Shown in pieces: positions 3,409 to 61,876 of a stretch of 64,000 bases of DNA (within the stretch, counting starts at the first letter, position 1; the number at the start of each line of letters is the position of its first letter). The notes below the pieces were generated by a model. The model saw only the letters and a list, made by a program, of their open reading frames with translations. It was not told the DNA's origin and ran no database searches. A program made the position numbers and the translations under genes. The stretch is taken from positions 173,916-237,915 of IMG/VR virus record IMGVR_UViG_3300043464_002284. One strand, 5' to 3'.

Positions 3409-3954
3409 ATGATAAGCTCTAATGATGTACTAACACATACAGTAGATCCAAAATTTGTAGACTTAATAATTACCAATGCTAAAAAAGCAGAAATTGGTGG
3501 CAGGTCTCAAATTAGGAACTCTAAAAGCAGAGTATCCAATCTATCAGAAGATCAATTGGTTGGTCAAATATCCACCTACTGTGCTTCAATGATCCTTACT
3601 GGTTCTCCAGAAGGATATATACAAGCAAGAGATAAAGCAAACGCTAATCCTCTGGCTGGAGATAATGGTGTAGATATATCTGGTCTACCCAATATGGATA
3701 TCAAAGGTAGCCTAATGAGATATTCAAATAACCCATTAAACTATAGATTATTGGTTAGGCCAAAAGAAAGACACGATAATTGGATTTATGTGTTGGCATT
3801 AGTACCAAAAGAAAGACCTTATAAGACTTATCTTGTTGGCTGGGCTAATGATAATGATTTACCTTTAAAGCCCTATGATGGAGAAATAAAGTCTTTACAT
3901 GGAGCATACGTTATAGAAGCTAAGAACCTAAGAAAGATTGCGGAACTAAGATGA
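3409..3954 (+). CDS. Hypothetical phage protein, possible PD-(D/E)XK nuclease fold
   Basis: GVD...MDIKGS pattern; weak. Confidence 0.5.
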   Translation: MISSNDVLTHTVDPKFVDLIITNAKKAEIGGRSQIRNSKSRVSNLSEDQLVGQISTYCASMILTGSPEGYIQARDKANANPLAGDNGVDISGLPNMDIKGSLMRYSNNPLNYRLLVRPKERHDNWIYVLALVPKERPYKTYLVGWANDNDLPLKPYDGEIKSLHGAYVIEAKNLRKIAELR

Positions 3955-5195
3955 ACCGAAGACATTTTTTAAATCACTGTGCCGCAACATCTTCTCTGGT
4001 AGCATCTTCGTCTTTTTTTACTCAGTCTATTTTAGCTAATGCTAATGATTTAAAGAAAAGACATAAGAGTGCTATTCTTTTATGGATGGGTGGTGGCCCA
4101 AGCACTATTGATCTATGGGATTTAAAGCCGGGTGCTGCTACTGGTGGAATTTTTAAGCCAGTATCTACTAGTGCTGATGGTATTCAGATTTGCGAACATC
4201 TGCCACTAATGGCACAGCAAATGCACCACATGAATATTGTACGATCTATGAGTACAAGAGAAGCAGACCACATGAGAGGTCGCTATTATATGCACACAGG
4301 ATATGTTCCTAATCCTAATGTTGAGCATCCTAGTTATGGATCAGTCATTTCTCATGAATTAATGTCTAGCATACCACAACTTGATATTCCTCCATTCGTT
4401 AGTATTGGAGGAACCAGTATTGGTGCTGGATTTTTGGGAACATCTTATTCTCCATTCGTAGTTAATTCTAATGGAACAGTTCGTGATCTTGATATGGGCA
4501 TAGATCAGTCTAGATTAGACCAAAGACTCAATATGCTTAAAACTATCGAAGATAAGTTTGTAAATGAAAAACGTGGAGACTATGCTTCTGACCACTCTAA
4601 ACTTTTGACTAAAACAGTCAAGCTAATGACTAGTCCTCAGATGGAAGTATTCAAAGTATCTAAAGAACCAAAAGAAGTTCAAGAAAGATATGGTAATACA
4701 GGATTTGGCCGAGGTTGTTTGATGGCACGAAGATTGGTGGAAATGGGTGTTCCATTTATTGAGGTTGATCTTGGCGGATGGGATAATCATACTGATATTT
4801 TTAAGACTCTACAGGATCAAAAACTTCCAGAACTAGATAAGGCTATGAGTGCCTTGATAAGCGACCTTAGCGATAAAGGACTGTTGCAGGATACTGCTAT
4901 TATTTGGATGGGTGAATTTGGACGAACGCCAAATATTAATGGTAATGGTGGGCGAGATCATTGGGCTAGAAGTTGGAGTGTCGTTGTTGGTGGAGCAGGA
5001 TTTAAGGGTGGTATTGTTGTTGGAGAAACTAGCAGTGATGGTAAGGAAGTAATTACGGAACCATACTCATCTCAAGACTTAATGGCTAGTGTTCTTAAAT
5101 CATTAGGAATATCTTTAGAAACCAATTTTACTGCTAAAAATGGACGACCAATGAGAATTGCTAATAGTGGCAAACTTATTAAAGAACTATTTTAA
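3951..5195 (+). CDS. DUF1501 family protein with Tat signal (Planctomycete-type)
   Basis: MNRRHFL twin-arginine signal; WMGGGPSTIDLWDLKP, GGWDNH, GEFGRTP, GRDHW motifs. Confidence 0.92.
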   Translation: MNRRHFLNHCAATSSLVASSSFFTQSILANANDLKKRHKSAILLWMGGGPSTIDLWDLKPGAATGGIFKPVSTSADGIQICEHLPLMAQQMHHMNIVRSMSTREADHMRGRYYMHTGYVPNPNVEHPSYGSVISHELMSSIPQLDIPPFVSIGGTSIGAGFLGTSYSPFVVNSNGTVRDLDMGIDQSRLDQRLNMLKTIEDKFVNEKRGDYASDHSKLLTKTVKLMTSPQMEVFKVSKEPKEVQERYGNTGFGRGCLMARRLVEMGVPFIEVDLGGWDNHTDIFKTLQDQKLPELDKAMSALISDLSDKGLLQDTAIIWMGEFGRTPNINGNGGRDHWARSWSVVVGGAGFKGGIVVGETSSDGKEVITEPYSSQDLMASVLKSLGISLETNFTAKNGRPMRIANSGKLIKELF

Positions 5196-22746: not shown

Positions 22747-23751
22747 ATGGCAGCTGGATTAGACGTCGGTACAAGCTATATTGTTTTATCAAAAGAAGAT
22801 AAAAAAAGCCACATCATGTATAAAGATTTTAGAGATGCATTTTATGTCATCAAACCCACAACACCAGTTGCTACAAAAATGATTGAAAAAGGTCTTGCTG
22901 GTAAGGTTTTCATTAAAGATAGTGACGGTTCTTTTGTTCTCTTAGGTAAAGATGCGATTGAAAAAGCCATAGAGAGAAACGACACAGCAAAAAGACCTAT
23001 GTATAAGGGTGTTGTTTCCGCTAAAGAAAAAGATGCCAAAAAGATCCTGGCTTTCATCTTGAAAGAAGTTGTTGGTCAAGCCTCAGAGGAAAACGAACAG
23101 CTTGTATTTTGCGTACCTGCTCAACCAGTAGATCAAGAAGATGAAGATTTTGATGTTGGATATCATGAAGATGTGGTAAAGACAATTTTAAGAGAGTGTG
23201 GATATAATGCAAAAGCAATAAATGAAGCCGAAGCTCTTTGTTACGCTGAATTAGATGTTGAGGACTATACGGGTATTGCTGTTAGTTGTGGTGCTGGGAT
23301 GACTAATGTTTGTGTTATGTTGAACGGTGAGCCTACTGTTGTTTTTAGTACAACTAAAAGTGGCGATTGGGTAGATCGTATGAGTGCCGTAGCAACGGGA
23401 GAACCAGACAGTGTTGTTCAAGCAGAGAAGGAGGGCGGGGGTTTTGTAATAGGAGAACCCAGCGATAGTCCTGTTTTGGGTGCTGTGTCAGCATACTATG
23501 AAAGACTGATCGACTATACAACTAAACAGTTAGCTCACGCACTATCTAATCATAAATCTTTGCCAAAGTTTAAAAATCCATTAACTATTGTTGTTGCTGG
23601 TGGAACTTCGCAAGCCGCTGGATATATTGAGCAATTTGCTAAAAAACTAGAAGAGAATGGATTTCCTCTTAAAATTAAAGAAGTAAAACATGCAGCAGAT
23701 CCACTGCACGCTGTTGCTAAGGGGTGTTTGATAGCAGCAAAGGTTTTGTAA
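22747..23751 (+). CDS. Actin-like ATPase (MreB/ParM/Hsp70 fold)
   Basis: Phosphate-1 GLDVGTS, connect INEAEA, phosphate-2 SCGAGMTN, adenosine VVAGGTS, AVAKG. Confidence 0.85.
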   Translation: MAAGLDVGTSYIVLSKEDKKSHIMYKDFRDAFYVIKPTTPVATKMIEKGLAGKVFIKDSDGSFVLLGKDAIEKAIERNDTAKRPMYKGVVSAKEKDAKKILAFILKEVVGQASEENEQLVFCVPAQPVDQEDEDFDVGYHEDVVKTILRECGYNAKAINEAEALCYAELDVEDYTGIAVSCGAGMTNVCVMLNGEPTVVFSTTKSGDWVDRMSAVATGEPDSVVQAEKEGGGFVIGEPSDSPVLGAVSAYYERLIDYTTKQLAHALSNHKSLPKFKNPLTIVVAGGTSQAAGYIEQFAKKLEENGFPLKIKEVKHAADPLHAVAKGCLIAAKVL

Positions 23752-24109: not shown

Positions 24110-25060
24110 ATGGCTAAAAAAAGATCCAATAAAAATAATTGTGGACTGTTTCCGTATATCAAAGAAGAACTATACGGGGATTTCTCAGATGGTCAAAAAA
24201 TACCTTGGTCTATTGAGAAGTTTCATATAGATCAACTGTGGAATGCTTCAACTGGCGAAGGTATTAAGGTTGCTGTTATAGATAGTGGATGTGATTTAAA
24301 TCACGAAGATCTTAAAGACAATTTTATCCAGGGTAAAAACTTTGTTGAACCAAACAAAGACCCTATGGACGAGAACAGTCACGGTACTCATGTTGCTGGT
24401 ACTATCTGTGCAAAAAATAATAATCTGGGGGTTGTTGGAATAGCCCCAAACGTACAGATCATGCCCATTAAAGTCTTTGGGGCTGATGGTCGTGGCGACA
24501 ACAGAACGGTCTCTAATGCGATTGTGTGGGCTGCTGATCATGGCGCTGATATCCTGTGTATGTCTTTGGGTTCTCCGTATCAGTCAGCAGATCTGGAATC
24601 AGCTATTAATTATGCTCTTAAAAAAGGAGCTGTTTCATTTTGTGCTGCTGGCAATGGTGGTGAATCATCAGAAATATATTATCCAGCTAGGTATGAGCAA
24701 ACAGTTAGCACCGGAGCAATTGACGAAAAATTAAATCGAGCTTACTTCACATGCAAGGGTAGCGAATTAGATTTTCTGGCTCCAGGATTTAATATCTTAA
24801 GTACTATTCCTGGAAATAAATATGCTTTGATGAGCGGCACCAGTATGGCTAATCCATTTGTTGTGGGATGCGCATCATTATTGCTGTCTTATGTAAGAAA
24901 AGCCAAACTAAATACTAAATTAAAAACAGCAAATGACTATATAGAAATTTTACAAAAATACACATTTAATTTATCTAATCCTAATTATTCTAATCATAAA
25001 GAATACGAAGGAAACGGTGTGCTAGACCCAAGGAAATTCAACGGATGGCAAGACCTGTGA
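24110..25060 (+). CDS. Subtilisin-like serine peptidase (S8), intracellular type
   Basis: VAVIDSG, HGTHVAG, AAGN, SGTSMA; no signal peptide; N-terminal GLFPY resembles the LIPY motif of ISPs. Confidence 0.95.
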   Translation: MAKKRSNKNNCGLFPYIKEELYGDFSDGQKIPWSIEKFHIDQLWNASTGEGIKVAVIDSGCDLNHEDLKDNFIQGKNFVEPNKDPMDENSHGTHVAGTICAKNNNLGVVGIAPNVQIMPIKVFGADGRGDNRTVSNAIVWAADHGADILCMSLGSPYQSADLESAINYALKKGAVSFCAAGNGGESSEIYYPARYEQTVSTGAIDEKLNRAYFTCKGSELDFLAPGFNILSTIPGNKYALMSGTSMANPFVVGCASLLLSYVRKAKLNTKLKTANDYIEILQKYTFNLSNPNYSNHKEYEGNGVLDPRKFNGWQDL

Positions 25061-25074
25061 AATGAGGTGATAAG

Positions 25075-25833
25075 ATGTTTAGATCTTTATTATTGATATT
25101 TTTTATTCTGTCTGGTATTCAATTAGGATTTGCTGGCACAATAGACCCTAACACTCCAGACTCAAAGCATATAGAATATGGGTCTAAATTTCATAGTGTA
25201 GTCAAGCTATGTTGTTTTGATGGAAAAGGAATGTCTTGTGGTTCTGCCGTAGTAATAGATCCACACTGGATAATTACTGCTGCTCATGTAGTAGAGAATT
25301 GCCATAGTTGGTCAGTCACAGTAGGAGAAGAACATTACAAAATTGATAAAATAATTATGCATGAAGATTATAAGACTGATATATTTGGATATAACGACAT
25401 CGCTTTAGGTTATTTAGAGAAAGAGATAAAACTAGATCACTACCCTGATCTATATAAAGATTCTGACGAGGTTGGGAGGGTGTGTTCGATGGCAGGATGG
25501 GGTTTTACCGGAACATTTAATACTGGAATAGAGAAAGCCGACGGAAAAAGAAGAGCCGGATCTAATTTTATAGATAGAACAGAACGAAAAATTCTGGTTT
25601 GCTCTCCCTCAAGACGTAATGAAAAAACCACAGAACTTGAATACCTCATAGGTAGCGGAGATAGTGGTGGGGGTCTATTTATAAACAATAAGCTTGCGGG
25701 AATTCACTCTTCTGTTATTGGATATGATGGTAAGCCAAATTCTACTTACACAGATGAGAGTTGTCATACGAGGATTAGTTTATATTCTGATTGGATTGAT
25801 TTGACAATCAAGGGGAATACAAATCCTCAATAG
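25075..25833 (+). CDS. Secreted trypsin-like serine protease (S1)
   Basis: Signal peptide; TAAHV, NDIAL, GDSGG. Confidence 0.92.
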   Translation: MFRSLLLIFFILSGIQLGFAGTIDPNTPDSKHIEYGSKFHSVVKLCCFDGKGMSCGSAVVIDPHWIITAAHVVENCHSWSVTVGEEHYKIDKIIMHEDYKTDIFGYNDIALGYLEKEIKLDHYPDLYKDSDEVGRVCSMAGWGFTGTFNTGIEKADGKRRAGSNFIDRTERKILVCSPSRRNEKTTELEYLIGSGDSGGGLFINNKLAGIHSSVIGYDGKPNSTYTDESCHTRISLYSDWIDLTIKGNTNPQ

Positions 25834-47450: not shown

Positions 47451-48044
47451 ATGGATCGTATAAATAATATTCTCTCTGATGTTAATAGTGCTCTAACTCA
47501 ACAGGCTAGGTCTTGTGACGATATGATCAATGACCCAAGACTAACACTAGAAGACATGCAAGAACTACTAGAAATACAAGCCATTCAAAAAAAACTTAAT
47601 CAACTAAAAAACACCAAAGCTGAAGATGGCGATTTTTTAGAGGTCGAAAATACGGAAATTGAATCTATTGAACAGGAAATGATGGAGTATAAGAAAGATT
47701 TCTATGACATGAGTGTAGGATCTCTCATGGCAATTATGTCGAACGCTCAGAAAATAGTAGAAAATCTGTCCAATCCCCAAGTAGCAGAAAACTTGACAGA
47801 GAGCTGGCTACAGGGTAAAATCGCCATAACTGAGGACTACATGCGAACTATTCACGATTTTGTCATGTACGTCAACCAGTCTGACGATAACACAGAAGCG
47901 GCCAATCGGCCAGGACTATGGGAAAATATCCGCAGAAAAAAAGAGAGGATGGGCAAAAACTATAAACCAGCAAAGACTGGAGACAAGGACAGACCGGATT
48001 CAAAAACATGGAAAAAGCTAACAGACGAAAACAAAAAAGTCTAA
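47451..48044 (+). CDS. Hypothetical protein with basic C-terminal phage module
   Basis: RPGLWENIRRKK...KDRP tail. Confidence 0.6.
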   Translation: MDRINNILSDVNSALTQQARSCDDMINDPRLTLEDMQELLEIQAIQKKLNQLKNTKAEDGDFLEVENTEIESIEQEMMEYKKDFYDMSVGSLMAIMSNAQKIVENLSNPQVAENLTESWLQGKIAITEDYMRTIHDFVMYVNQSDDNTEAANRPGLWENIRRKKERMGKNYKPAKTGDKDRPDSKTWKKLTDENKKV

Positions 48045-48676
48045 AAGCTCGTAGGACTTTAAAAACAAAAAAACAAGGAAAACAAATGGACAAACAATTT
48101 GAGTCGCTATCTTTCTATATCAACCTAGCTAAAAAAACTATTTCTAAATTCGCCCCAAAGTTTTACAATGGACTCTCTGTTGAAATGCTCAAAAATGAGG
48201 ACGCTGTATCAGATATAGCTACTGCATTGATGTATGCCGATTGGAGATATGATGAAAATCGCAAGGGCAAAACAGGTTTACAGAAAACATTATACTCATA
48301 CCGCAACCAGTGTGCTATATGGGCTATTAAAACTTATGTAACCAATAAGTATAAGCAAACTAAACTATCTAGCTTAGACTTTGAACTGGATAATGAAAAA
48401 TTCTTAGATTCTATTATTCAAGATAAGAAGCACTTGTCTCCTTTAGAGATCATTATAGATCAAGAGTATACTGATAATCTATCTCTGTCTATAGACACTC
48501 TGTTATCTAATAATCTTCTTAGCGAAAAGCAAAAAACGCAAATTAAGATGTATTACTTTGAAGAAAAAACTTTGTCTGAAATAGGAGACACATTCGGGGT
48601 TTCCAGAGAGGCAGTAAGACAGAATATCAAAAGGGGTCTTGAGATAATCAAGAGCTACGATCCAGCAAATGCTTAA
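48008..48676 (+). CDS. sigma70-family RNA polymerase sigma factor; start probably ATG 48086
   Basis: Region 4 HTH LLSEKQK...KTLSEIGDTFGVSREAVRQ; region-2-like N-terminal half. Confidence 0.85.
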   Translation: MEKANRRKQKSLKARRTLKTKKQGKQMDKQFESLSFYINLAKKTISKFAPKFYNGLSVEMLKNEDAVSDIATALMYADWRYDENRKGKTGLQKTLYSYRNQCAIWAIKTYVTNKYKQTKLSSLDFELDNEKFLDSIIQDKKHLSPLEIIIDQEYTDNLSLSIDTLLSNNLLSEKQKTQIKMYYFEEKTLSEIGDTFGVSREAVRQNIKRGLEIIKSYDPANA

Positions 48677-49598: not shown

Positions 49599-50273
49599 GT
49601 GGTACAAAATAAAGACACCAACGATATAGCATATTTACATGATCATAATATAGATATTTCTAATAGAGAAATATATCTTCACTCTTACATAGGGGAGGGT
49701 GATGAAGAGGGAGGAGTAGACTATAGAAGTTCTGTTAAGTTTGAAAAAAATCTTAGACATTTAAATTTAATATCTTTAGAGCCAATATTAGTACATATGC
49801 ATTTGCCCGGTGGGGATTGGCAAGATTGTTTAGGTATGTACGATGCTATTAAAGCGTCCAAAGCAAAAGTGATTATTCTAGCGTATGCTAAAGCAGAATC
49901 TTCTAGTAGTGTTTTATTACAGGCGGCTGATTTGAGAATATTAATGCCGAACACAAATGTATTAATCCACTATGGTTCATTTAGCGTAGACGCAGAGCAC
50001 AGCAAGGCGGCTGCTGCTGGCATACAATGGAACGAAAGAGAGTGTGACAAGATGGTGGATGTATTCACTGATCGGTGTATGAGTAGTATTATATGTAAAG
50101 AAAAAAATTGGAAAAGAATGATGGCAAAAAAACACATTGTTTCTCAGTTAGCCAATAAATGCGATTGGATCCTAACCGCTCAACAAGCTGTTGACTATGG
50201 TTTTGCTGATGGTATTTTGGGTACTAAAAAATTTCCAAATATGGACTATTTAAAAACATACGCCAAGAGATAA
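49599..50273 (+). CDS. clpP: ClpP-like (S14) protease subunit
   Basis: LPGG, YDAI, AESS (Ser), LIHY (His), CDWILTAQQAVDYGFAD (Asp). Confidence 0.85.
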   Translation: MVQNKDTNDIAYLHDHNIDISNREIYLHSYIGEGDEEGGVDYRSSVKFEKNLRHLNLISLEPILVHMHLPGGDWQDCLGMYDAIKASKAKVIILAYAKAESSSSVLLQAADLRILMPNTNVLIHYGSFSVDAEHSKAAAAGIQWNERECDKMVDVFTDRCMSSIICKEKNWKRMMAKKHIVSQLANKCDWILTAQQAVDYGFADGILGTKKFPNMDYLKTYAKR

Positions 50274-51959: not shown

Positions 51960-53348
51960 ATGAGCACACCAGACATAACAAAGGCCATCTCTGCTAACGA
52001 TATTAAAAACGGAGCGTCATTATTATTAATTAATAAAACTGGCATAGAAACACTTTTTGATAACAGTAGAGATGCCGAACAAGGACTAAGTCCATTAGGC
52101 CCCGAAACAACAGATAGATTTGATGACGTAGGATACTATCTACTGCCAACATCATCCCCTGGACCAGTTAACACAGACACACTTGATAATGTTACTGATC
52201 GTGGAGCAATAACTACCAATGGAATAACTGTAAGCTCTTTGACACTATCTCAAGGTAGCAAAATAAGCGAAACAAATAATACAATATTACTAGCACCCCC
52301 AACAGCAGCATCCGGACAAAGTTTAGTAATTCGCCCAACTGCTGCTCCCGACCATAGCCATGTGCATCTTGTTGCGGAGGATCCCTCAACCGTGGACCTG
52401 TGCTTGGGCGACGATGATCAATATGTTAAGATTCAAAAAAATGGTGGAGACGTTATTGTTGGCACACAAAGAACACTTACTACCAATAACAACTATATAA
52501 ATGGTACTGATTTTTCAACAGATGTTGATCTAGGTATCGGAATAGGTATAATAGCAGGTTGGTATCAACGAAACGCAAGCCAAATTGAATTTGCATTATT
52601 TGGAAATTCTGTATTTCAATCATACCTTACTGGACTGGCATTAGGTAGAACTGTAATTGTTACATATACCAATGGCGCCACTCCGAGTGGCACCGCTACA
52701 CTTACAGCAACATTAACACAAGTATTTAGTAGCACAGGACAAGCTGATCCTAATAATCCTACTTGGAGTCGGGTTAGTGGTAGAATAGATGCAACATTAC
52801 CAACTGTAGTAGGCGAATTGAGCATTGTTAGTATTAACTTCCCAGTATACTCTACGGATACAAATAACTGGACATTTGGCACAGATGGCAAATTAATATT
52901 GCCAGGAGGATATGCTCAAGTTGTTGTAGAGGGAGATAGTGGTGTTCGTATTGGAACAGCAGGAACTAATGTCGCTCCTAATAGCCAAATTAAAATTGGC
53001 GGTGCTGAACATGCGTTTGAAATCTTCGGAGGGCCTCCTGGGTATAGCTGGACGTTTGACGGAAATGGTGAACTAACATTACCAACTAGCGGTAGCATCA
53101 CATTCCCAAATAACACAACCCAAACTTCTGCTGGAATACCAAGTAATACTGGATTGGTTCCAAATTCAGATAGTATTACTAATATTGTTAGTATATGTCA
53201 AGCAGCTTATGATGGTCTTATTACTAAAAATTCTAGTACTCTATATATTATCTTAGAGTCTTGTGGAGGCGGCGGTCCTGGCGGTGGTAATCCTTTTCCT
53301 CCTGGTAGTGGCCCCGGTCCCGGTCCTGGCCCCGGTCCCGGAGGCTAA
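51960..53348 (+). CDS. Putative tail fibre/appendage protein
   Basis: Beta-rich T/G/S composition; WTFG.DG.L.LP repeats; ITNIVSICQAAYDGL...TLYII fibre C-terminal motif; Gly-Pro tail. Confidence 0.65.
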   Translation: MSTPDITKAISANDIKNGASLLLINKTGIETLFDNSRDAEQGLSPLGPETTDRFDDVGYYLLPTSSPGPVNTDTLDNVTDRGAITTNGITVSSLTLSQGSKISETNNTILLAPPTAASGQSLVIRPTAAPDHSHVHLVAEDPSTVDLCLGDDDQYVKIQKNGGDVIVGTQRTLTTNNNYINGTDFSTDVDLGIGIGIIAGWYQRNASQIEFALFGNSVFQSYLTGLALGRTVIVTYTNGATPSGTATLTATLTQVFSSTGQADPNNPTWSRVSGRIDATLPTVVGELSIVSINFPVYSTDTNNWTFGTDGKLILPGGYAQVVVEGDSGVRIGTAGTNVAPNSQIKIGGAEHAFEIFGGPPGYSWTFDGNGELTLPTSGSITFPNNTTQTSAGIPSNTGLVPNSDSITNIVSICQAAYDGLITKNSSTLYIILESCGGGGPGGGNPFPPGSGPGPGPGPGPGG

Positions 53349-54358: not shown

Positions 54359-54562
54359 ATGAGCACGCTTAATATTACAACAGTTATATCATCTAATGCA
54401 ATTAAAAATGGAGCATCCCTATTATCAGTTACAAAAACTGGTTTAGAGACAACTTTTGACAACAGCAAAGACACTGAACAAGGACTATCTTCTCTAGACA
54501 GCTTTACAAATAATCGTTTTGATGATACGAGTTATTATATTCCCAGAGGAACACCCTCATAA
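54359..54562 (+). CDS. Stand-alone copy of the N-terminal module of 51960..53348
   Basis: MST..IT..IS.N.IKNGASLL...KTG.ET.FDNS.D.EQGLS...RFDD..YY aligns along its length. Confidence 0.7.
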   Translation: MSTLNITTVISSNAIKNGASLLSVTKTGLETTFDNSKDTEQGLSSLDSFTNNRFDDTSYYIPRGTPS

Positions 54563-54577
54563 TTTGGAGATTAATAT

Positions 54578-54913
54578 ATGGTTAAACCTGGATATAGAAC
54601 TAGTGAATTTTGGTTTACTATGGTTAGCTTTATTTTTAGTGGACTTTATCTTGTTGGTCTTATAAGTGAAAATTCTCAAAAAGAAGATTTAATTCAAGAA
54701 ACTACCAGAGGAGTAGAAGCTACTATTCTTATTATAGGGCAATTAACGGTATTATTTAAATATATTAACGGAAGAACAGATCTTAAGAAAACTTGGTGGA
54801 GTACCGCAACACCCGAAGAAAGAAAAGTGGCAAATAAAGCAAATGATAGAAGCAAAAAGAAAACAACCAAAAAGAAACCAGTAACCAAAACCAAAGCTAA
54901 GCCATTGACCTAA
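54578..54913 (+). CDS. Holin-like membrane protein
   Basis: KPGYRTSEFW N-motif, two TMs, highly basic C-terminus. Confidence 0.6.
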   Translation: MVKPGYRTSEFWFTMVSFIFSGLYLVGLISENSQKEDLIQETTRGVEATILIIGQLTVLFKYINGRTDLKKTWWSTATPEERKVANKANDRSKKKTTKKKPVTKTKAKPLT

Positions 54914-54922
54914 TTTCTCTAT

Positions 54923-55387
54923 TTGGTGTATTCTATTATAACAATAGGAGTTTTTATGGATATTAATATTCTCGGTTTAGAACTATCTTCTAAGTTAGAA
55001 GATCTTGTGAATAAAGTTAAAAGCACCCTAGCTAATAGCAAATCTGTTGCTGTAACTCAAGCGTGGGGAATCCTACAACTTGCAGTAGCAGATACAGTAC
55101 AAGTTATTGAAGACAATAATCCTTCTTTGAAGGGATCTAGTAAAAAAGAAATTGCTTTGAGCATGATAAGTAATTTTTATGATAAGGTTTTTCTAGTGGT
55201 GAACATCCCCTTTGTTCCGGTCATGTTCCAGCCTATTATACAAAAGCACATCAAAGCTCTTTTGATGTTGTTGGTAAGTTCGACTATAGATTCTATGGTT
55301 GAAATTTTCAGGCAAACCGGTGTGTTTGAAGATCATAATACCGTTGATCCAAGTGTAGATAATACCCCAAAAGTTTCAGATAAATAA
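54923..55387 (+). CDS. Hypothetical protein; start probably ATG 54956
   Basis: AGGAG RBS before 54956; helical. Confidence 0.6.
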   Translation: MVYSIITIGVFMDINILGLELSSKLEDLVNKVKSTLANSKSVAVTQAWGILQLAVADTVQVIEDNNPSLKGSSKKEIALSMISNFYDKVFLVVNIPFVPVMFQPIIQKHIKALLMLLVSSTIDSMVEIFRQTGVFEDHNTVDPSVDNTPKVSDK

Positions 55388-55402
55388 AACGAGGAATATA
55401 AA

Positions 55403-55801
55403 ATGAATTTTACAGAAAGCTTTCAAGAGTTTAGTAGCAAGTTGAGCACAACGGATTTGGCTCTTTACGCTGGTGTAGGTTTAGTGTTATGGGTACTATT
55501 TAAGGATAAACTTAGTCCCGTACAACAACTACTAACTTCTGTTATGGACAGAGTTAAGGGCTTAACGTCTGGTGGTGGAATGAAGCTACCAACAGTTGAT
55601 GTTCCAAAGTTTGACCCAGTTGTACTACCTAAAGCAGTCGGTGATAAAGATGATATATTTTTTAAGCTTGTGGTATCATGGAAGCAAACTCGTGATTTAG
55701 CAGAAAAGAGTGGCTGTGCCGAAGCTATTAAGGTTGCCGATCAGATGTTTCCATTTCTAAGTCCTAATGTATGTGCTAAAAAAGAGGATAAAGTTGTATG
55801 A
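55403..55801 (+). CDS. Single-TM hypothetical protein
   Basis: GAGG RBS; one TM. Confidence 0.6.
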   Translation: MNFTESFQEFSSKLSTTDLALYAGVGLVLWVLFKDKLSPVQQLLTSVMDRVKGLTSGGGMKLPTVDVPKFDPVVLPKAVGDKDDIFFKLVVSWKQTRDLAEKSGCAEAIKVADQMFPFLSPNVCAKKEDKVV

Positions 55802-56292
55802 AAAACAATAATTTATTACTAGTAGTTGCTGGCTTACTTATTCTGGTTGGATTAACTAAGTTTGATTTCTCAGGATTCAATATTCTGCCAAATAGACCCA
55901 ATGTTGTTGATGTATTAGAACTACCAGAACCAACAGACGAAACTGTTAAAAAAGAAGCTGATGATGTTGTTGCAGTATTAAAAGAGTCTGGAGCAAAGGG
56001 TGATGCTAAGAGATTAAGAGACCTATATCTTGATCTAGCAAAGCTTGTTGAGCTTGACGGAGAAAACGAAGTAGTTAAGAGTACAGAAGAAATTCGCCAA
56101 GCAAATAGTTTAGCTGGTGTTATGCTTAGACTAGACATTAAAGGCAAATATCCCAATCTAGCAAAAGAGGCAAAAGAAGTAGTTGTTGCTTCAATTGGCG
56201 ATGATCAAATTCTATTATCTAAAGAGCTAAGAGTTAAAGCCGTAGAAGGCCTTAATGCTTTAGCTTGGGCTTGTAATATGGGGTCAAAATAA
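55798..56292 (+). CDS. Membrane-anchored/secreted hypothetical protein
   Basis: N-terminal hydrophobic segment; ATGA overlap. Confidence 0.6.
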   Translation: MKNNNLLLVVAGLLILVGLTKFDFSGFNILPNRPNVVDVLELPEPTDETVKKEADDVVAVLKESGAKGDAKRLRDLYLDLAKLVELDGENEVVKSTEEIRQANSLAGVMLRLDIKGKYPNLAKEAKEVVVASIGDDQILLSKELRVKAVEGLNALAWACNMGSK

Positions 56293-57215
56293 TGCCAAGA
56301 CTATCTCCAAAAGAACTATACGATAATTATCGCAAAGGATTCAGCGGGTGCTTATGGGAACAGCACATATACGATGCTTTAATGGAACACTCTAAGTATC
56401 CATTATTTGGTGATGCTAGTAAAAAAATTAGCGGTAGTGGTAAAGGTAAACTTTCAACACCATACAAGAGCGTATTAAAATTTGATAAGCATCCTTATAA
56501 CGAAAGACAAACCACTGGGGATTGTGTTAGTCATGGAACACGAAATGCTTGTGACGTTTCGCGGGCAGTAGAAATAGATATACATAATGAGAGAGAAGAC
56601 TGGATAGCAAGGGGTGCAACAGAGGCTATCTATGGATATAGAGGATTCAGTGGACAAGGCATGAGTTGTGCAAGAGCAGCTGAATTTGTTAGTAAGGTTG
56701 GTGGCCTTGTTGTTAGAAAGAATTACGGCTTTGTAGACTTCAGTAAATACAATGGTAATTTAGGAGCGGGCTGGGGCGGTAGGGGTCTCCCTGATAAAGT
56801 ATTAGATCTTTCTAATGACCACCAAATTAAGACGGCTTCACTGATTAGAACAGTAGAAGAAGCTCGTGATGCTCTTGCTAATGGTTATGGATTAGCAGTA
56901 TGTTCTAATTATGGATTTAGTAATACCAGAGATAAAAAGGGATTTGCTAGAACATCTGGTAACTGGGCTCATTGTATGGCTTGGATAGCATGTGACGATA
57001 CTGGTAGTGAGCCAGCATTCTTAGTACAAAATAGCTGGGGTAAATGGAATGACGGAGGACATCCAGAATGGGGACCTATTCCAGAAGGGTCATTTTTAAT
57101 TCATGCTGATGCTGCTGCTGGAATGTTATCAGCTAATGGTTCTTATGCTTTTAGTGGTTTTGATGGTTTTCCTCTTCAAAAACTACCAAGTTATGGATTT
57201 GACGACTATTTGTAG
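56292..57215 (+). CDS. Papain-like cysteine peptidase (C1-like)
   Basis: QTTGDCVSHG (Gln oxyanion plus Cys), WAHCMAWIA (His), LVQNSWG (Asn). Confidence 0.88.
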   Translation: MPRLSPKELYDNYRKGFSGCLWEQHIYDALMEHSKYPLFGDASKKISGSGKGKLSTPYKSVLKFDKHPYNERQTTGDCVSHGTRNACDVSRAVEIDIHNEREDWIARGATEAIYGYRGFSGQGMSCARAAEFVSKVGGLVVRKNYGFVDFSKYNGNLGAGWGGRGLPDKVLDLSNDHQIKTASLIRTVEEARDALANGYGLAVCSNYGFSNTRDKKGFARTSGNWAHCMAWIACDDTGSEPAFLVQNSWGKWNDGGHPEWGPIPEGSFLIHADAAAGMLSANGSYAFSGFDGFPLQKLPSYGFDDYL

Positions 57216-57306
57216 TCTAGCCGTTTGAAATAATCAGGGACGTAAAACTAATCAAAGAAATTTGGTGTATATATTTATGTCCTTTTTTAAATAAGAGATT
57301 ATTTCT

Positions 57307-57495
57307 ATGAGACTAATAGACAAAATAGTTTTGAATAGATCAGTAAAAATACTTTTGGATTTTATCTTGTCTGTGCTCAAGATATTTGAAAAACACATTC
57401 CAGAAGATAAGCCTGATGGTCCGGTGAAACCAAAGCCAAAACCCAAAAGACCCTTAAAAGATCTGGTAGATAATATCTTACCATGGAGAAAGTAA
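57307..57495 (+). CDS. Small hypothetical protein
   Basis: Amphipathic N-terminus, PKPKPK, ends PWRK. Confidence 0.55.
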   Translation: MRLIDKIVLNRSVKILLDFILSVLKIFEKHIPEDKPDGPVKPKPKPKRPLKDLVDNILPWRK

Positions 57496-57496
57496 A

Positions 57497-57829
57497 ATGA
57501 ATAAATTATTTATAGGTCTATTTTGCGTTAGCCTATTGTTTACTGGATCTAACTACTATGGGTCAACAACAGCCCCAGTAACTCTTGCTGGAGGAATTAT
57601 TAAAGCCAAGCATACACAGGAGAGTGTCTCAAAATATAAAAGAAAAGATTGTCCAGTTTGCAAGGGTAAAGGATATTATATTAGTGGAGATGGTATTCTT
57701 AAAATAGATTGCACATATTGCGAACCAGACAAAGGAGCTATTACTGTTGGACCAATAAAATCTATAACCCCAACACAAAAAACACCATCTAAAAATAGTT
57801 GCATTACTGGCCAGTGTCCTTTAAAATAA
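57497..57829 (+). CDS. Secreted protein with DnaJ-type CxxCxGxG zinc motif
   Basis: Signal peptide; CPVCKGKG...CTYC. Confidence 0.65.
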   Translation: MNKLFIGLFCVSLLFTGSNYYGSTTAPVTLAGGIIKAKHTQESVSKYKRKDCPVCKGKGYYISGDGILKIDCTYCEPDKGAITVGPIKSITPTQKTPSKNSCITGQCPLK

Positions 57830-57886: not shown

Positions 57887-58798
57887 ATGGCCAAACAATT
57901 AGATCCATTTGTAAAATTTGTGGGACAAATATGTCGCAAGTGTTGCGATTGTAGGATATTAGACCCAAATGGAACCAACCCAAATTTAAAGTGCTGTAAT
58001 AGTTTGGAAGGAGTTACGCCACAATGTTACGATCCCAAAGACAGTTGTATGGAATGCATAGATGTATTCCCGGCGCCTGCTGCAAATTCAAATGAACCAA
58101 AACAAAAATTAGTACCTAAATGCCAAGAACAATCATTAAAATTTGTACATGAAAATAAAAACAAATGTTGTGATGGTGAATGTTATGATAATTGTAGTGA
58201 GTGTATAGAGAAAAAAGTTCAATTAAAATTTAATAATAGTACACCCCCCGCAAAAAAAGAATCAAAAACCGATCCAGACAAGATATATATCTGTTGTGGT
58301 GGAACAACAGTCTCAGCCCCCAAAAGAGAAGCTGATTGTTATGAGTGTGTAGATACACTAGAAAAATACATCTTAAATGATGGCAGAGAAGTTACATATA
58401 CTAAGAGTGTTCCAAGACTAAAAGAACCACCACAGGGCAAAACAACATGCTGTTACGGAGAATGGTATGATCCTAAGGAACCCTGCGATACATGCGACGA
58501 TGATGGAAAAAAATTAATCAAATTAGCATGCAATCCGCCTAAATTTGCAACAAACATATGGGATTATGTGCTTAATAAGGCATGCTGTAATGGTGAATGT
58601 TATAATCCAACATGTTATGACTGTATTAAAACAGAAGCTGGTACTTCGACTATAACACCAAAACTTGATTGCAAATGCTGTATTAATTATAGCTATCCGA
58701 TTTCAAGTCAATGTTGTAAGGGTAAACAATTGTGCTGTGTTGGTAGCTCATCTGAGCCTTCAGAATGCTATGATCCTAATTGCGATGTGTGTACCTAA
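57887..58798 (+). CDS. Cys-rich repeat protein
   Basis: Repeated CC..G.CY.P..C..C units. Confidence 0.75.
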   Translation: MAKQLDPFVKFVGQICRKCCDCRILDPNGTNPNLKCCNSLEGVTPQCYDPKDSCMECIDVFPAPAANSNEPKQKLVPKCQEQSLKFVHENKNKCCDGECYDNCSECIEKKVQLKFNNSTPPAKKESKTDPDKIYICCGGTTVSAPKREADCYECVDTLEKYILNDGREVTYTKSVPRLKEPPQGKTTCCYGEWYDPKEPCDTCDDDGKKLIKLACNPPKFATNIWDYVLNKACCNGECYNPTCYDCIKTEAGTSTITPKLDCKCCINYSYPISSQCCKGKQLCCVGSSSEPSECYDPNCDVCT

Positions 58799-58816: not shown

Positions 58817-61800
58817 ATGCCCGTTAAAAAAACAGTCTGCGAAAAACCACTCGAATGTTGCAAAGACCAAGCTACTCAAACAACGGAATGCTATGATCCA
58901 ACAAAATGTGAAGTTTGTGTTGGAGGAAAAGTTATCAAAGAGGCATCTAATAATGATGAATTAAAAAAGAAATGTAAAGAATGCCAGAAAACTGAAGTTA
59001 AAGATGTGGCTGATCCGACAATAGTCATTCATACACTGTATAATACAATTGATTTGTGTGATAATCCGGAATTTGGAACACAGAATAAGCCAAATTGTTG
59101 TTTTGGTACTTGTTGGAATGAAGATACTGATAAGTGTAAAAGATGTGACGCTACTCTTGGAGTAGTAGATAAATATGATAGCTTTAACATATGCGAAATA
59201 TGTGATCCAGCAACAGGAAACAAAATAACGAAACCATGCCCACAAGGCAAAGAATGTTGTCCTTCTCAATCTGAAGAATGTGTTGACATTTGTCATTGCG
59301 ATGGAGACAATACTATGACTCCTTGCGGCGCCTGTGGGTGTTGCGAACCATGCGAAAAATGTGAAAATGGAAATAAAATTACGGGCGCTTCAATTTCGTC
59401 ATCTGACGAATTTGAATGTAAAGTTTGTGACAAAGGAGAAAAAGTAAGCGCATGTGGAACTTGGGGTACGTGTTGTGGCGGAAAATGTATTAGCAATAAT
59501 GCTTCGGCTTGTGAATATTGTGGTTATTCCGGTTCTCCAACAAGTACTTGTACTAATTTCAGTCCAAATTGTTGTGGTACTGAATGTTGGAATCAAGATA
59601 CTGATAGGTGTTACAAGTGCGTGTCGGGTCCAAATAGGCCTCCAGTATTGGTTGCAAAATGTGGTATTTCGGATCCTAACCATATAGCAGATAAGCCGTT
59701 ATGTTGTAATGGTCAGTGTTACGATCCGAAAGGATGCGAGATATGCATTAATAATACCACTCTGAGATACATTATAGAAACTGATTCAGAAGGCTGCTGT
59801 ACTAATTATGATGGCGATAGAATAGTTTCAAGAAAATATACAAAAGCTACACATACTTGCTGTAATGGAGATATAGTTCCAAAAAATGAGTGTTGTGGTA
59901 ATTCTAGAATAAATACTAATGGCATTAAATGTTGTAATGATCTACCATATAATACAGATACAGATATGTGCTGTGATAACAAAATAATCAAAAAAACAGA
60001 TGATATTGATTGTTGTGTATATAAAGATCCTGTGGGAGATATTTTTTTAGAAAGAACATATGAAACAAGATGTGAAAAATGCACAACAGACGGAGTCATC
60101 AAAACATATGATGAGGGATGCTATAGCTGTTCATGGGAAGAAGGTCCAGTATTGATATGTGACAGTAAAAAACCTGACTGTTGTAGCTCCTGGAATATAG
60201 ACACAGCAAACGACAAAAAGGGGAAATGTTGGAATAAAGAACTACAAAAATGCGAGATGTGCGATGATGGTTCAATAGTCCCAGTAAAAGGATTAGTAGA
60301 ATTTCCTAGCTACGACCCACCTCATAAGACTGCTTTAGATGCCGATGACCTTCGTGGGGTAGCGACATGTTGCGGAGGAAAGTGGTACAGAAATACTGAC
60401 GATAGTTTACTCTTACAAGACTGGGCCCCTGAATTTCTTGAATTTCTTGGTCCGTTAAATATAGGACCAAAAACATGCTATGAGTGTATTAATGACTCAG
60501 TTGATAAATATTGTCTTTTTGAATATGACATTACCGAAAAACTATGGAAACCAAAAGATGTCAAAAAAGATCCAAAGATCGAATGCTGTATAGTTAATGG
60601 AGTAAGACAATGTTATAGTAAATGCGAATACAGATGCGTTCCAGACGGAAACACCTTCAAGCTTGAAGAAAACACCTCTGGATCATTGTCTCTAATACAA
60701 GATGTCACAAATGCTAAATTCAAATGTTGTCTTTTTACTCAAACACAATTCAATGAAAATTGTGAAATTTGCACCCCGATGGGCGTCTTGCCAAGATTAG
60801 ACTGTAAGTCTTGTTGTGATTATTTATGTTGCAAAAATGATTGTTGCGATGGTACTCCAGAATTTTGTTGTCCAGATAATTCTCCCAAATGTGTGGGTGG
60901 CGGTTTATGTTGCAAAAATGATGAAATAAAATGCGGATCGGTTTGCTGTCCATCAAATAGATGTAGTGGTAATGGTATCTGCTGTCCAGAGGGACAAGAA
61001 GTTTGCGGATCCTCTGGCGCATGCTGCCCAATAGGGTCTTGCTGCGCCAATGGAGAATGCGCATCTAGCAATCAAATTTGTTGTGGTGGATCTCCTAAAA
61101 ATCTCAATGAGTGCTCTGAATGCTGCAATAATACTTGTGTAAATACTTCACAAAAATGCTGTAACGATACTGATAATAATCAGTTTATCTGTAGCGATAA
61201 TCAAATATGTTGCGGTGATTCTTGTTGCAATAGCGGTGACGCATGTTGCGATGGAACTTGTTATAATTCGCTAAACTGCGAAAAATGTACAAATTTTGGT
61301 ATAGTAGGCCTAGAACTAAATGAAGCTTGTTGTGCTGGTATGACATATAGACCGATTGATTGTGAGAAATGTGAAAACGGAGTTAAAAAACCTTATATAA
61401 GTACTAGTAATGTCTGTTTTTGTTATAAAGGACAAGAATATTGTACATGTCCAATAGCTGGTTTGCGCATAGAAATAGATACGGAAAATACAGGACATTG
61501 CTGTGATGCTGCTACTTTTAAGGTTAGGCTGGTTAGTGCTTTGAGTGGTCAAGGCTCAATAATTGGTTCAGTTAATTTAAATAATTCAGATTCCTGCATC
61601 CCACCATTCAGACAAATAACTGTATCAGACGATGCAGCCAGGGATCTATTAAATAATTTAGTTGGACAAGATTGTTGTAATTTTAGGTTAGAATTAGTAT
61701 GCGACCCAACTGGATTCGGTGCCTTTCAGCCCTTCGGTCCTGATCAATGTCATACCTCCATAGCGAACGGAAGAGTCTTTAAGACACTATCTAACGGATC

Positions 61801-61876
61801 AGAATCACTGATATGGAGTGGGTATTTAGATAATACTGGAACATTTAATATTTGTGATGAAACACTATTACCATAA
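58817..61876 (+). CDS. Giant Cys-rich repeat protein (1019 aa)
   Basis: Many CC-x-G-x-C-[YW]...C-E-x-C repeats; distinct C-terminal domain; no signal peptide. Confidence 0.8.

Follow-up and report, generated by a model that had tools for sequence, protein, structure and literature searches.

All known endolysin classes cut peptidoglycan (PG). Among the enzymes that phages use to cut the wall are the clan-CA cysteine endolysin domains (CHAP, NlpC/P60, Amidase_5; e.g., LysK CHAPK and PlyC), which are cysteine-histidine hydrolases of papain-like topology with a known PG amidase or endopeptidase chemistry (PMC10318531, PMC4126393), while signal-anchor-release (SAR) endolysins such as P1 Lyz are muramidases activated by disulfide isomerisation. 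Peptidases of the papain family (C1A), including bacterial xylellain (PDB 3ois) and cathepsins B and L, normally cut L-peptide bonds in proteins, and papain-family enzymes are not known to cut PG stem peptides. A papain-family enzyme is used late in infection by baculoviruses, in which the V-CATH cathepsin, with chitinase, dissolves host structures to free progeny. The biology of phages of Planctomycetes is almost undescribed, with a 2025 review of the phylum mentioning phages once (PMC12673574).

Here a putative lysis cassette is described from a complete 237,915-bp freshwater phage genome (IMG/VR record IMGVR_UViG_3300043464_002284), the analysis being centred on a window of 64,000 nucleotides (positions 173,916 to 237,915 of the record). 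The phage probably infects Planctomycetes and has no recognisable cell-wall-cutting enzyme, with a papain-type protease sitting in its place beside a membrane-anchored helper and a putative thiol-redox partner. This suggests a so far undescribed way for phages to open the envelope of their host.

Organization and conservation of the cassette

The original prediction described a compact late cassette made up of a holin-like protein, three membrane or helical proteins, a C1-like cysteine peptidase without a signal peptide and a secreted Zn-finger protein, with no muramidase or amidase. This observation holds, as all the ORFs described are present on the + strand (Table 1), together with a small ORF (o62) that had not been mentioned. 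The genes are tightly packed, with a 4-nt overlap between o132 and o164 (55798-55801), a 1-nt overlap between o164 and C1 (56292) and a 1-nt gap before zn110 (57495/57497); the o132/o164/C1 overlaps suggest translational coupling. Late expression is not shown, with promoter and terminator scans at background and no RNA run listed.

Table 1. Predicted genes of the cassette and two other genes in the window, with the number of 80 related IMG/VR loci in which each was found.
Position	Strand	Name	Length	Predicted product and sequence features	Loci (of 80)
54578..54913	+	hol111	111 aa	Holin-like small membrane protein; begins MVKPGYRTSEFW; conserved N-terminal motif KPGY.TSEFWFT; one strong hydrophobic helix (11-29), a weaker one (~47-65); very basic C-terminal tail, net charge +12 over the last 30 residues	72, always the first gene of the cassette
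54923..55387	+	o154	154 aa	Membrane/helical protein; hydrophobic segments at 89-128; start codon uncertain (TTG); may be a second holin or an antiholin	74, same position
55403..55801	+	o132	132 aa	One N-terminal TM; conserved C-terminal domain (FF.LvvSWKQTRDLA...C...C)	76
55798..56292	+	o164	164 aa	N-terminal TM plus helical bundle; putative adaptor of the peptidase
56292..57215	+	C1	307 aa	Papain-family (C1A-like) cysteine peptidase; no hydrophobic N-terminus; catalytic residues Q73, C78, H227, N247, S248, W249; conserved ~72-aa N-terminal extension
57307..57495	+	o62	62 aa	Small, basic, proline/lysine-rich	56, low identity (median 44%)
57497..57829	+	zn110	110 aa	Signal-anchored or secreted; hydrophobic N-terminus, then DnaJ-type CxxCxGxG...CxxC zinc ribbon (CPVCKGKG...CTYC); putative redox-type partner
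49599-50273				ClpP-like head-maturation protease (phrog_94, 2.3e-22)
51960-53348				Tail-fibre-like (Phage_tail_C, E 1.3e-4)

The seven ORFs are collinear in more than 80 related phage contigs, and the order hol111-o154-o132-o164-C1-(o62)-zn110 is the same in every one of 80 related IMG/VR loci that has enough flank, while the genes on either side vary. C1 is the best-conserved gene of the cassette, with a median identity of 85% against 54-75% for its neighbours. Searches of Pfam, PHROGs and NCBIfam found no muramidase or amidase domain in any cassette protein, nor does C1 belong to a known PG-hydrolase catalytic family.

The holin designation rests on features only. Although hol111 has the small size, transmembrane segment and charged C-terminal tail of a holin, it matches no holin family in Pfam, PHROGs or NCBIfam, and all 120 listed homologues of the 736 found are unnamed or called hypothetical. 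The only weak lead was an Atlas match to Phage_holin_1 at a score of 0.76. For o154 only sub-threshold hits were obtained (DUF5084 at 0.052, holin_LLH at 0.067), o132 matched no family, and hol111, o154 and o132 are confined to the jumbo-phage group, with no homologue of o132 detected in the distant loci. No spanin pair is recognisable in the window and no cassette protein has a lipobox.

The predicted peptidase and its conserved partners

The assignment of C1 to the papain family was confirmed. In an alignment of 65 diverse homologues C78, H227 and W249 are invariant, while Q73, N247 and S248 are present in at least 90% of sequences. A family profile hits only papain-family chains in the PDB (caricain at 3.9e-5), aligning these residues with the Cys and His-Asn-Ser-Trp blocks of caricain. 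The AlphaFold model (pLDDT 94.8) gave 263 PDB matches at E<=0.001 in Foldseek, with every row listed among the best being a papain-family structure, led by xylellain (1.5e-10) and followed by cathepsins B, L and K. The enzyme is nevertheless missed by Pfam, with no family at E<=1 for the protein itself, one relative reaching 17.0 bits against the PF00112 cut-off of 20.7, and only 14% of one Atlas cluster carrying PF00112. No secretory signal and no I29-type propeptide was detected, the N-terminal 72 residues having no Pfam match. The family comprises 1445 clusters at 50% identity, and inteins sit at the catalytic Cys and His in many relatives.

The widely conserved unit is a three-gene core of o164, C1 and zn110, whereas the original prediction had treated the helical and Zn-finger proteins as loose neighbours. 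They are obligate partners of the peptidase, conserved as neighbours and as gene fusions across distant phages, with homologues flanking C1 in phages whose C1 is only 35-45% identical. Iterative searches with jackhmmer found o164 homologues immediately upstream of C1 in three distant loci (L095, L013 and L012), where they carry a lipoprotein signal (LCGC), and a homologue also lies upstream of C1 in a Planctomycetota prophage (L276). In at least 11 database proteins a TM helix and the o164 domain are fused N-terminally to the C1 domain. The model of o164 (pLDDT 89) has no PDB or Atlas fold match. Homologues of zn110 lie immediately downstream of C1 in L013 and L095, having the same anchor and Zn ribbon plus a thioredoxin domain with WCGPC or HCAPC, while two further loci (L094 and L096) have analogous genes and prophage L276 has a TM-anchored Thioredoxin_7 protein (1.3e-7) two called ORFs downstream of C1. 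The Zn-ribbon and/or CPPC motifs, the latter in a thioredoxin-like tail, also occur as C-terminal fusions to C1 in seven proteins. The zn110 of this phage lacks the thioredoxin domain that is present in most distant relatives, scores only E 0.027 (below threshold) against Pfam DnaJ_CXXCXGXG, and the genome has no Thioredoxin match.

In other phages the three parts are made as one Sec-exported, N-terminally anchored polypeptide, and C1 homologues in the Planctomycetota loci L276 and L278 have an N-terminal TM or signal. As such the enzyme probably acts outside the cytoplasm. In every locus examined C1 sits among small TM proteins, none of which is a proven holin. In prophage L276 the module lies directly upstream of the terminase large subunit and portal, with capsid, tail tube and integrase genes within the 60 kb examined around it.

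The absence of a canonical endolysin elsewhere, which had been named beforehand as a test of the prediction, was examined by six-frame searches of the complete genome. None of 15 PG-hydrolase or PG-binding Pfam families (GH24, Amidase_2, SLT, GH25, Amidase_3, M23, NlpC/P60, CHAP, GH108, M15_4, VanY, M15_3, Glucosaminidase, GH19 and PG_binding_1) was found, while the same method detected two S8 subtilases as a positive control. A PG hydrolase of an unrecognised fold could still hide among the ~300 mostly unannotated ORFs, as only these 15 families were searched genome-wide and the bulk Pfam scans show only their top 25 families. The scenario that the original prediction had named as refuting it, a virion maturation enzyme, is unlikely, with a separate ClpP-like head-maturation protease encoded at 49599-50273 and relatives of C1 being signal-anchored or fused to an anchor.

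The link to Planctomycetes proposed by the original prediction is real. A host-derived DUF1501 gene of the phage is 63-80% identical to chromosomal genes of Planctomycetota, with 79 of the 80 best loci carrying labels of that phylum and none being syntenic with the phage. In addition, 8 of 401 sampled Planctomycetota genomes, the sample being confined to that phylum, carry the C1 family. The GC content of the phage (37%) is unusual for a phage-host pair when set against the 0.48-0.71 of these loci.

A possible role in envelope lysis

The interpretation of the cassette as a protease-centred lysis system suited to Planctomycetes is partly supported: the papain-family peptidase, the lack of a PG hydrolase and the host link hold, while the holin assignment does not rest on any known family and lysis is inferred from sequence and context alone. 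The best explanation, to which a probability of roughly one half can be given, is that the core is a three-part, envelope-acting cysteine-peptidase module taking the place of the endolysin in the lysis cassette of phages of Planctomycetota. In this view the signal-less peptidase would accumulate in the cytoplasm until the holin-like hol111, perhaps with the two following membrane proteins, opens the inner membrane, upon which it would reach the periplasm and dock on o164, although a complex prediction for C1 and o164 gave no verdict. The CxxC partner would keep the catalytic thiol reduced, or uncage it, and may also reduce disulfide-linked envelope proteins. The peptidase would then cut the load-bearing envelope, for which the target could be the cysteine-rich protein layer of Planctomycetes, protein tethers between outer membrane and wall, or peptide cross-links of the thin PG. 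Planctomycete wall fractions are protein-dominated and contain cysteine-rich YTV proteins (PMC12673574), but Planctomycetes do have lysozyme-sensitive PG sacculi (PMC4432640), such that a protease alone may not be enough, and either the enzyme could itself cut PG peptides or an unrecognised PG hydrolase may exist. The analysis establishes the fold and catalytic residues, the conserved neighbourhood and fusions of the three parts, the export signals in relatives, the prophage position next to terminase, the absence of the 15 families and the Planctomycetota link, whereas holin function, peptidase activity and periplasmic action in this phage, the role of the redox partner, the substrate and lysis itself are inferred.

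A more far-reaching and rather unlikely possibility, which is not excluded, is that phages of Planctomycetota lyse their hosts with a protein-targeting rather than a purely PG-targeting system, in which the protease works with a dedicated disulfide reductase and a membrane adaptor to dismantle the cysteine-rich, disulfide-linked protein layer. This would be the first phage lysis enzyme class aimed at envelope protein and direct genetic evidence that this layer, and not only the thin murein, bears load in these bacteria.

Of the alternatives, the one that survives best, though it remains unlikely, is that the module is an accessory lysis factor, with an unrecognised PG hydrolase cutting the wall and the protease/redox module handling the last step by breaking the outer membrane, its protein tethers or the protein layer in place of spanins. 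In keeping with this are the lack of a recognisable spanin pair, the lysozyme-sensitive PG of Planctomycetes, the normal preference of papain-family enzymes for protein and the lipoprotein nature of the partner upstream of C1 in L095, L013 and a further locus, L277, as o-spanins are lipoproteins. However, no PG hydrolase was found with the 15 families in the complete genome or among the neighbours of the module in five other contexts, and o164 is modelled as a globular helical bundle (~130 aa in the mature lipoproteins of L095 and L013) rather than a spanin-like coiled coil or short proline-rich lipoprotein.

Less likely still is a role in envelope remodelling or exclusion, in which the anchored protease would trim host surface or periplasmic proteins (receptors, secretion or defence components) to block superinfection or stop progeny from sticking to debris, and in prophages may be expressed during lysogeny. 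Exported or anchored relatives would be active without a holin, family members occur in Planctomycetota chromosomes, and the cassette lies between tail-fibre-like and hypervariable Cys-rich genes, a region typical of host-interaction functions. Against this, the position immediately before terminase in L276 is the classical late-lysis slot, the soluble form in this phage needs a membrane lesion to reach the periplasm, and the very high conservation and the inteins at catalytic residues suggest an essential lytic-cycle function rather than a dispensable moron. A virion-associated or assembly protease, maturing tail-fibre or Cys-rich proteins or carried in the particle to digest the protein envelope at entry, is the least likely, since despite the fibre-like genes before it, the Cys-rich variable genes after it and a protease-rich phage (two S8 subtilases, a trypsin-like and a ClpP-like enzyme), the flanking genes are not conserved with the module, which in distant phages sits among small early/middle-type ORFs or before terminase, its partners and many homologues carry Sec or lipoprotein signals or TM anchors that do not fit cytoplasmic virion assembly, and a dedicated head-maturation protease is encoded separately.

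If the module acts in lysis, it would add a new enzyme class and a new redox-coupled logic to phage lysis. It offers a concrete handle on the long-running question of what holds the planctomycete envelope together, the thin murein or the cysteine-rich protein layer. The family is also a new, compact source of putative bacterial-envelope-active proteases and a striking intein hotspot.

Comparison with described systems

With papain family C1A peptidases, C1 shares the predicted two-lobed fold and the Gln-Cys-His-Asn-(Ser)-Trp constellation and, like xylellain, has an N-terminal extension before the catalytic domain. It differs in its divergence, with only 10-16% identity to solved structures, and in being encoded by phages with two dedicated partner proteins and frequent inteins. 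The CHAP, NlpC/P60 and Amidase_5 domains are likewise placed next to small membrane proteins but belong to a different cluster of the superfamily with a smaller core, whereas C1 gives no CHAP or NlpC/P60 signal and matches the protein-cleaving papain/cathepsin cluster.

Membrane-anchored DnaJ-type zinc-finger and thioredoxin-like oxidoreductases (periplasmic TlpA/ResA/CcmG type) share with the zn110 group an N-terminal anchor followed by CxxCxGxG and/or a thioredoxin fold with a CxxC motif (WCGPC, HCAPC, CPPC), although zn110 itself has only the Zn ribbon, its redox role is inferred, and no such protein is known as a fixed partner of a papain-family enzyme. Viral cathepsins appear among the structural matches to C1, but V-CATH is a secretory-pathway zymogen of a eukaryotic host, acting in tissue liquefaction rather than envelope rupture and having no anchor or redox partners. 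As with SAR endolysins, one enzyme family with a putative role in lysis exists both as soluble, presumably holin-dependent forms and as N-terminally anchored, exported forms, with control by thiol-disulfide chemistry a plausible parallel. In SAR endolysins, however, it is the muramidase's own cysteines that rearrange, while here the enzyme is a peptidase and the putative redox element is a separate (or fused) Zn-ribbon/thioredoxin protein.

The cassette and the genome that carries it

The cassette lies in the last 64 kb (173,916-237,915) of a 237,915-bp IMG/VR virus record with a GC content of 36.8%, in which an 81-bp terminal repeat marks a closed assembly. A simple ORF call gave 298 ORFs, including giant ones of up to 6,560 aa. 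Bulk Pfam and PHROG scans revealed a jumbo phage with DNA polymerase III alpha, DnaB, RecA, SSB, PhoH, rIIA/rIIB, a sigma factor, many glycosyltransferases and several proteases, although the bulk Pfam scans listed only the 25 top families and cannot by themselves exclude weak matches to peptidoglycan (PG) hydrolases. In addition to rIIA/rIIB homologues and glycosyltransferases, the window carries an actin homologue, RuvB, a SET-domain protein, a ferritin-like protein, IMPDH/GMP reductase and UDP-galactopyranose mutase. Outside the window a 70-kb block on the minus strand holds only about 36 ORFs, while elsewhere the genome has RCC1-repeat, Laminin_G_3, fn3 and Mtd_N (major tropism determinant) domains, which hints at diversity-generating or adhesin-like virion proteins.

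The observation behind the original prediction was confirmed, with every ORF that it named present on the + strand and its description of the proteins borne out by hydropathy, while one small ORF (o62) had not been mentioned. The genes overlap or nearly abut and among 80 related IMG/VR loci (C1 identity 79-96%) their order is identical wherever the flank is long enough. The tail-fibre-like genes upstream are kept in about a quarter of these loci, while the Cys-rich genes downstream are found in none, indicating that the cassette is a real, conserved module set between variable regions. A 67-aa ORF just before the cassette, found in only 7 of the 80 relatives, repeats the N-terminal ~65 residues of the 462-aa tail-fibre-like protein (MST..IT..IS.N.IKNGASLL...) and looks like the leftover anchor domain of an exchanged fibre gene. 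Promoter and terminator scans were no better than shuffles.

Features of the cassette and of the surrounding genome (window coordinates unless marked as genome coordinates)
Feature	Coordinates	Strand	Length	Description
hol111	54578-54913	+	111 aa	Starts MVKPGYRTSEFW; one strong and one weaker hydrophobic helix and a +12 C-terminal tail
o154	54923-55387	+	154 aa	Hydrophobic segments
o132	55403-55801	+	132 aa	Hydrophobic segments
o164	55798-56292	+	164 aa	Hydrophobic segments
C1	56292-57215	+	307 aa	Papain-family peptidase; no hydrophobic segment
o62	57307-57495	+	62 aa	Small ORF
zn110	57497-57829	+	110 aa	Hydrophobic N-terminus followed by CPVCKGKG...CTYC
DUF1501 gene	3951-5195			Pfam 1.8e-103
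Actin homologue	22747-23751			Volactin/MreB-like (2.7e-62)
Two serine protease genes	24110-25060 and 25075-25833			S8 subtilase gene directly followed by a trypsin-like serine protease gene
Sigma-factor-like protein	48008-48676			A few kb upstream of the cassette
ClpP-like head-maturation protease	49599-50273			phrog_94, 2.3e-22; a few kb upstream of the cassette
Tail-fibre-like protein	51960-53348		462 aa	
Fibre remnant ORF	54359-54562		67 aa	Just before the cassette
First Cys-rich protein	57887-58798		303 aa	39 Cys; no Pfam match
Second Cys-rich protein	58817-61876		1019 aa	Full of CC..C.DP..C..C repeats
Second S8 subtilase	130775-132385 (genome)			
Block of about 36 ORFs	54824-125150 (genome)	-	70 kb	Includes proteins of 6,560, 2,591, 2,232 and 1,833 aa

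A papain-family peptidase and its conserved partners

Direct annotation of the cassette proteins with Pfam, PHROGs and NCBIfam gave only sub-threshold or low-complexity hits, with a PHROG "tail assembly chaperone" hit for hol111 discarded as it lies in the basic tail of the protein, and the 307-aa C1 protein was not recognised. Likewise, a tblastn search of C1 against 50,697 GenBank phage records found no match and a single-sequence phmmer search against the PDB gave only a chance-level hit to phi92 gp138. In contrast an exhaustive search for the family found 1,445 clusters at 50% identity. In an alignment of 65 diverse members C78, H227 and W249 were invariant and Q73, N247 and S248 nearly so, corresponding to the papain Gln19/Cys25/His159/Asn175/Ser176/Trp177 set. 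The family profile hit only papain-family chains in the PDB, led by caricain at 3.9e-5. The AlphaFold model is confident (pLDDT 94.8), with Foldseek returning xylellain (1.5e-10) and then cathepsins B, L and K, Der p 1, actinidin and the like, while the nearest ESM Atlas clusters are named "Peptidase C1A papain C-terminal domain-containing protein". The original prediction of a papain-type peptidase, made from sequence alone, was therefore correct, the protein being a very divergent member of the papain/cathepsin cluster with a complete set of catalytic residues and not a CHAP or NlpC/P60 domain.

The C1 family is also an intein hotspot. Among the 150 best 50%-identity representatives, at least 28 are split exactly before the catalytic Cys78 (D77|C78) and at least 11 exactly after the catalytic His227 (H227|C228), with four split at both sites; P0121, P0122 and P0130 are among the intein-bearing relatives. 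Pfam confirmed Intein_splicing plus LAGLIDADG domains in the three that were scanned, while the window copy has no intein.

Jackhmmer profiles built from the relatives were run against the ORFs of five distant metagenome contigs (L012, L013, L094, L095 and L096) whose C1 is only 35-45% identical. The gene just upstream of C1, o164, has homologues just upstream of C1 in L095, L013 and L012, while the Zn-ribbon gene zn110 has homologues just downstream of C1 in L013 and L095. In L095 and L013 the upstream partner begins with a lipoprotein signal (…LCGC…) and the downstream partner is a signal-anchored protein with the same CxxCxGxG ribbon plus a thioredoxin domain with WCGPC or HCAPC. L094 and L096 have analogous Zn-ribbon and/or thioredoxin-like genes in the same place, although in the phage itself no Thioredoxin family match was found. 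A search of IMG/VR with a further distant protein (P0405) found nothing and searches with reordered alignments returned mostly the same jumbo-phage group in their best rows, such that the distant contexts rest on these five contigs and six Planctomycetota loci.

Among the long database homologues, at least 11 are fusions of an N-terminal TM helix, the o164 domain and the C1 domain, with several continuing after C1 with the CxRCNGxG ribbon and/or a CPPC/CSSC thioredoxin-like segment. Conserved neighbourhood plus repeated gene fusion is strong evidence that the three proteins act together and, because the unit starts with a TM anchor or a lipoprotein signal, it most probably acts outside the cytoplasm. 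The o164 domain is predicted to fold as a helical bundle (pLDDT 89) with no match in the PDB by Foldseek or in the ESM Atlas. A complex prediction for C1 with residues 28-164 of o164 returned a score of 0.00, which is not evidence either way.

Genomic context, other proteases and host

In every locus the C1 gene lies among small membrane proteins. A sample of 401 Planctomycetota genomes gave 8 with a family match, some on megabase contigs. One of these loci (L276, on a 1.8-Mb contig with a GC of 0.59) has the gene order o164 homologue, C1 with an N-terminal TM, a doubtful 108-aa ORF overlapping its end, a TM-anchored thioredoxin-like protein, a small secreted protein, a short minus-strand ORF, then terminase large subunit, an HTH protein and a lambda-type portal. 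Capsid, tail-tube and integrase families lie within the 60 kb examined around it, together with planctomycete-typical DUF1559 and DUF1580 genes. This is a prophage in a planctomycete chromosome, with the module in the slot where many temperate phages keep their lysis genes. Two other chromosomal loci (L277 and L278) show TM proteins, a lipoprotein and then C1, with the C1 of L278 having its own signal-like N-terminus. Soluble and exported or anchored versions of one enzyme are also seen in endolysin families with canonical and signal-anchored members.

Six-frame searches of the complete genome found nothing at E<=1 for Phage_lysozyme, Amidase_2, SLT, GH25, Amidase_3, M23, NlpC/P60, CHAP, GH108, M15_4, PG_binding_1, VanY, M15_3, Glucosaminidase and GH19, while the same procedure found two S8 subtilases. 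No PG hydrolase was seen among the neighbours of the module in the distant contigs or the planctomycete loci. These are absences of recognisable families and do not prove that no PG hydrolase exists. The original prediction had named a canonical holin-endolysin-spanin cassette elsewhere, with the protease being a virion maturation enzyme, as the outcome that would count against it. The prohead-protease reading was considered and rejected, as a ClpP-like head-maturation protease is encoded separately and this, together with the export signals of relatives, argues against it. With the S8, trypsin-like, ClpP-like and C1 enzymes the phage encodes at least five proteases.

The two extremely Cys-rich proteins that follow the cassette are not recognisable YTV wall proteins, since the genome has no YTV family match. 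The planctomycete locus L277 also has a 477-aa protein with 65 Cys next to its C1 module.

The DUF1501 gene of the window is 63-80% identical to chromosomal genes. Of the 80 best genome loci, 79 are labelled as Planctomycetota lineages (Pirellulales, Planctomycetaceae, Pirellula, Kuenenia-labelled bins and complete Pirellulaceae genomes), none of the 80 is syntenic with the phage and all have a GC of 0.48-0.71. The gene sits in 36% GC phage DNA, while the bacterial copies, up to 80% identical in protein in freshwater Planctomycetota, lie in 61-70% GC DNA, such that this is a host-derived gene whose base composition has been fully recoded. With the prophage evidence, which comes from a sample of that phylum alone, a planctomycete host is the best reading, although the 37% GC of the phage and the resulting phage-host gap of 25-30 points remain an unexplained mismatch.

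Proposed mechanism and relation to known systems

These observations fit a lysis module whose enzyme is a papain-type peptidase, and the interpretation given in the original prediction is partly supported. What the analysis establishes is the conserved order of the genes, the fold and catalytic residues, the recurrent neighbourhood and fusions of the three parts, the export signals of relatives, the prophage context, the link to Planctomycetota and the absence of the PG-hydrolase or PG-binding families searched, while holin activity, peptidase action in the periplasm of the host, the roles of the two partners, the substrate and lysis itself are inferred. In this phage the peptidase lacks a signal and so should need a membrane lesion. 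The conserved first gene of the cassette looks like a holin by size, topology and charge, but it belongs to no holin family and is limited to this phage group. In this view the adaptor (o164) would hold the enzyme at the membrane, with the CxxC partner keeping or making the catalytic thiol reduced in the oxidising periplasm. The partner could act as a safety catch for the exported forms and might open disulfide-linked envelope proteins.

Several substrates may be considered. Planctomycete wall fractions are dominated by protein and contain cysteine-rich YTV proteins (PMC12673574), which suits a protease-plus-reductase pair, but these bacteria also have thin, lysozyme-sensitive murein (PMC4432640). 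As such the enzyme may cut peptide cross-links or wall-membrane tethers, or an unrecognised glycosidase may cooperate. A probability of about 0.5 is placed on C1 being the lytic enzyme of the cassette. An accessory, spanin-like role in the last step of lysis is the foremost alternative although unlikely on present evidence, with an envelope-remodelling or exclusion role somewhat less likely still. A virion or assembly protease is the most doubtful of these readings.

Literature searches found no description of a papain-family enzyme in a phage lysis cassette, nor of lysis in planctomycete phages. What would be new is the enzyme class and its partners within an otherwise familiar arrangement, the lysis cassette, while the more radical reading, lysis by attacking envelope protein, is not excluded. 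By predicted fold and active site the enzyme is a divergent C1A peptidase, but it fails the Pfam threshold and lacks the usual signal and propeptide. In its inferred function it resembles the cysteine endolysin domains (CHAP, NlpC/P60) and, in its soluble and anchored variants and possible redox control, the SAR endolysins, being a member of neither.
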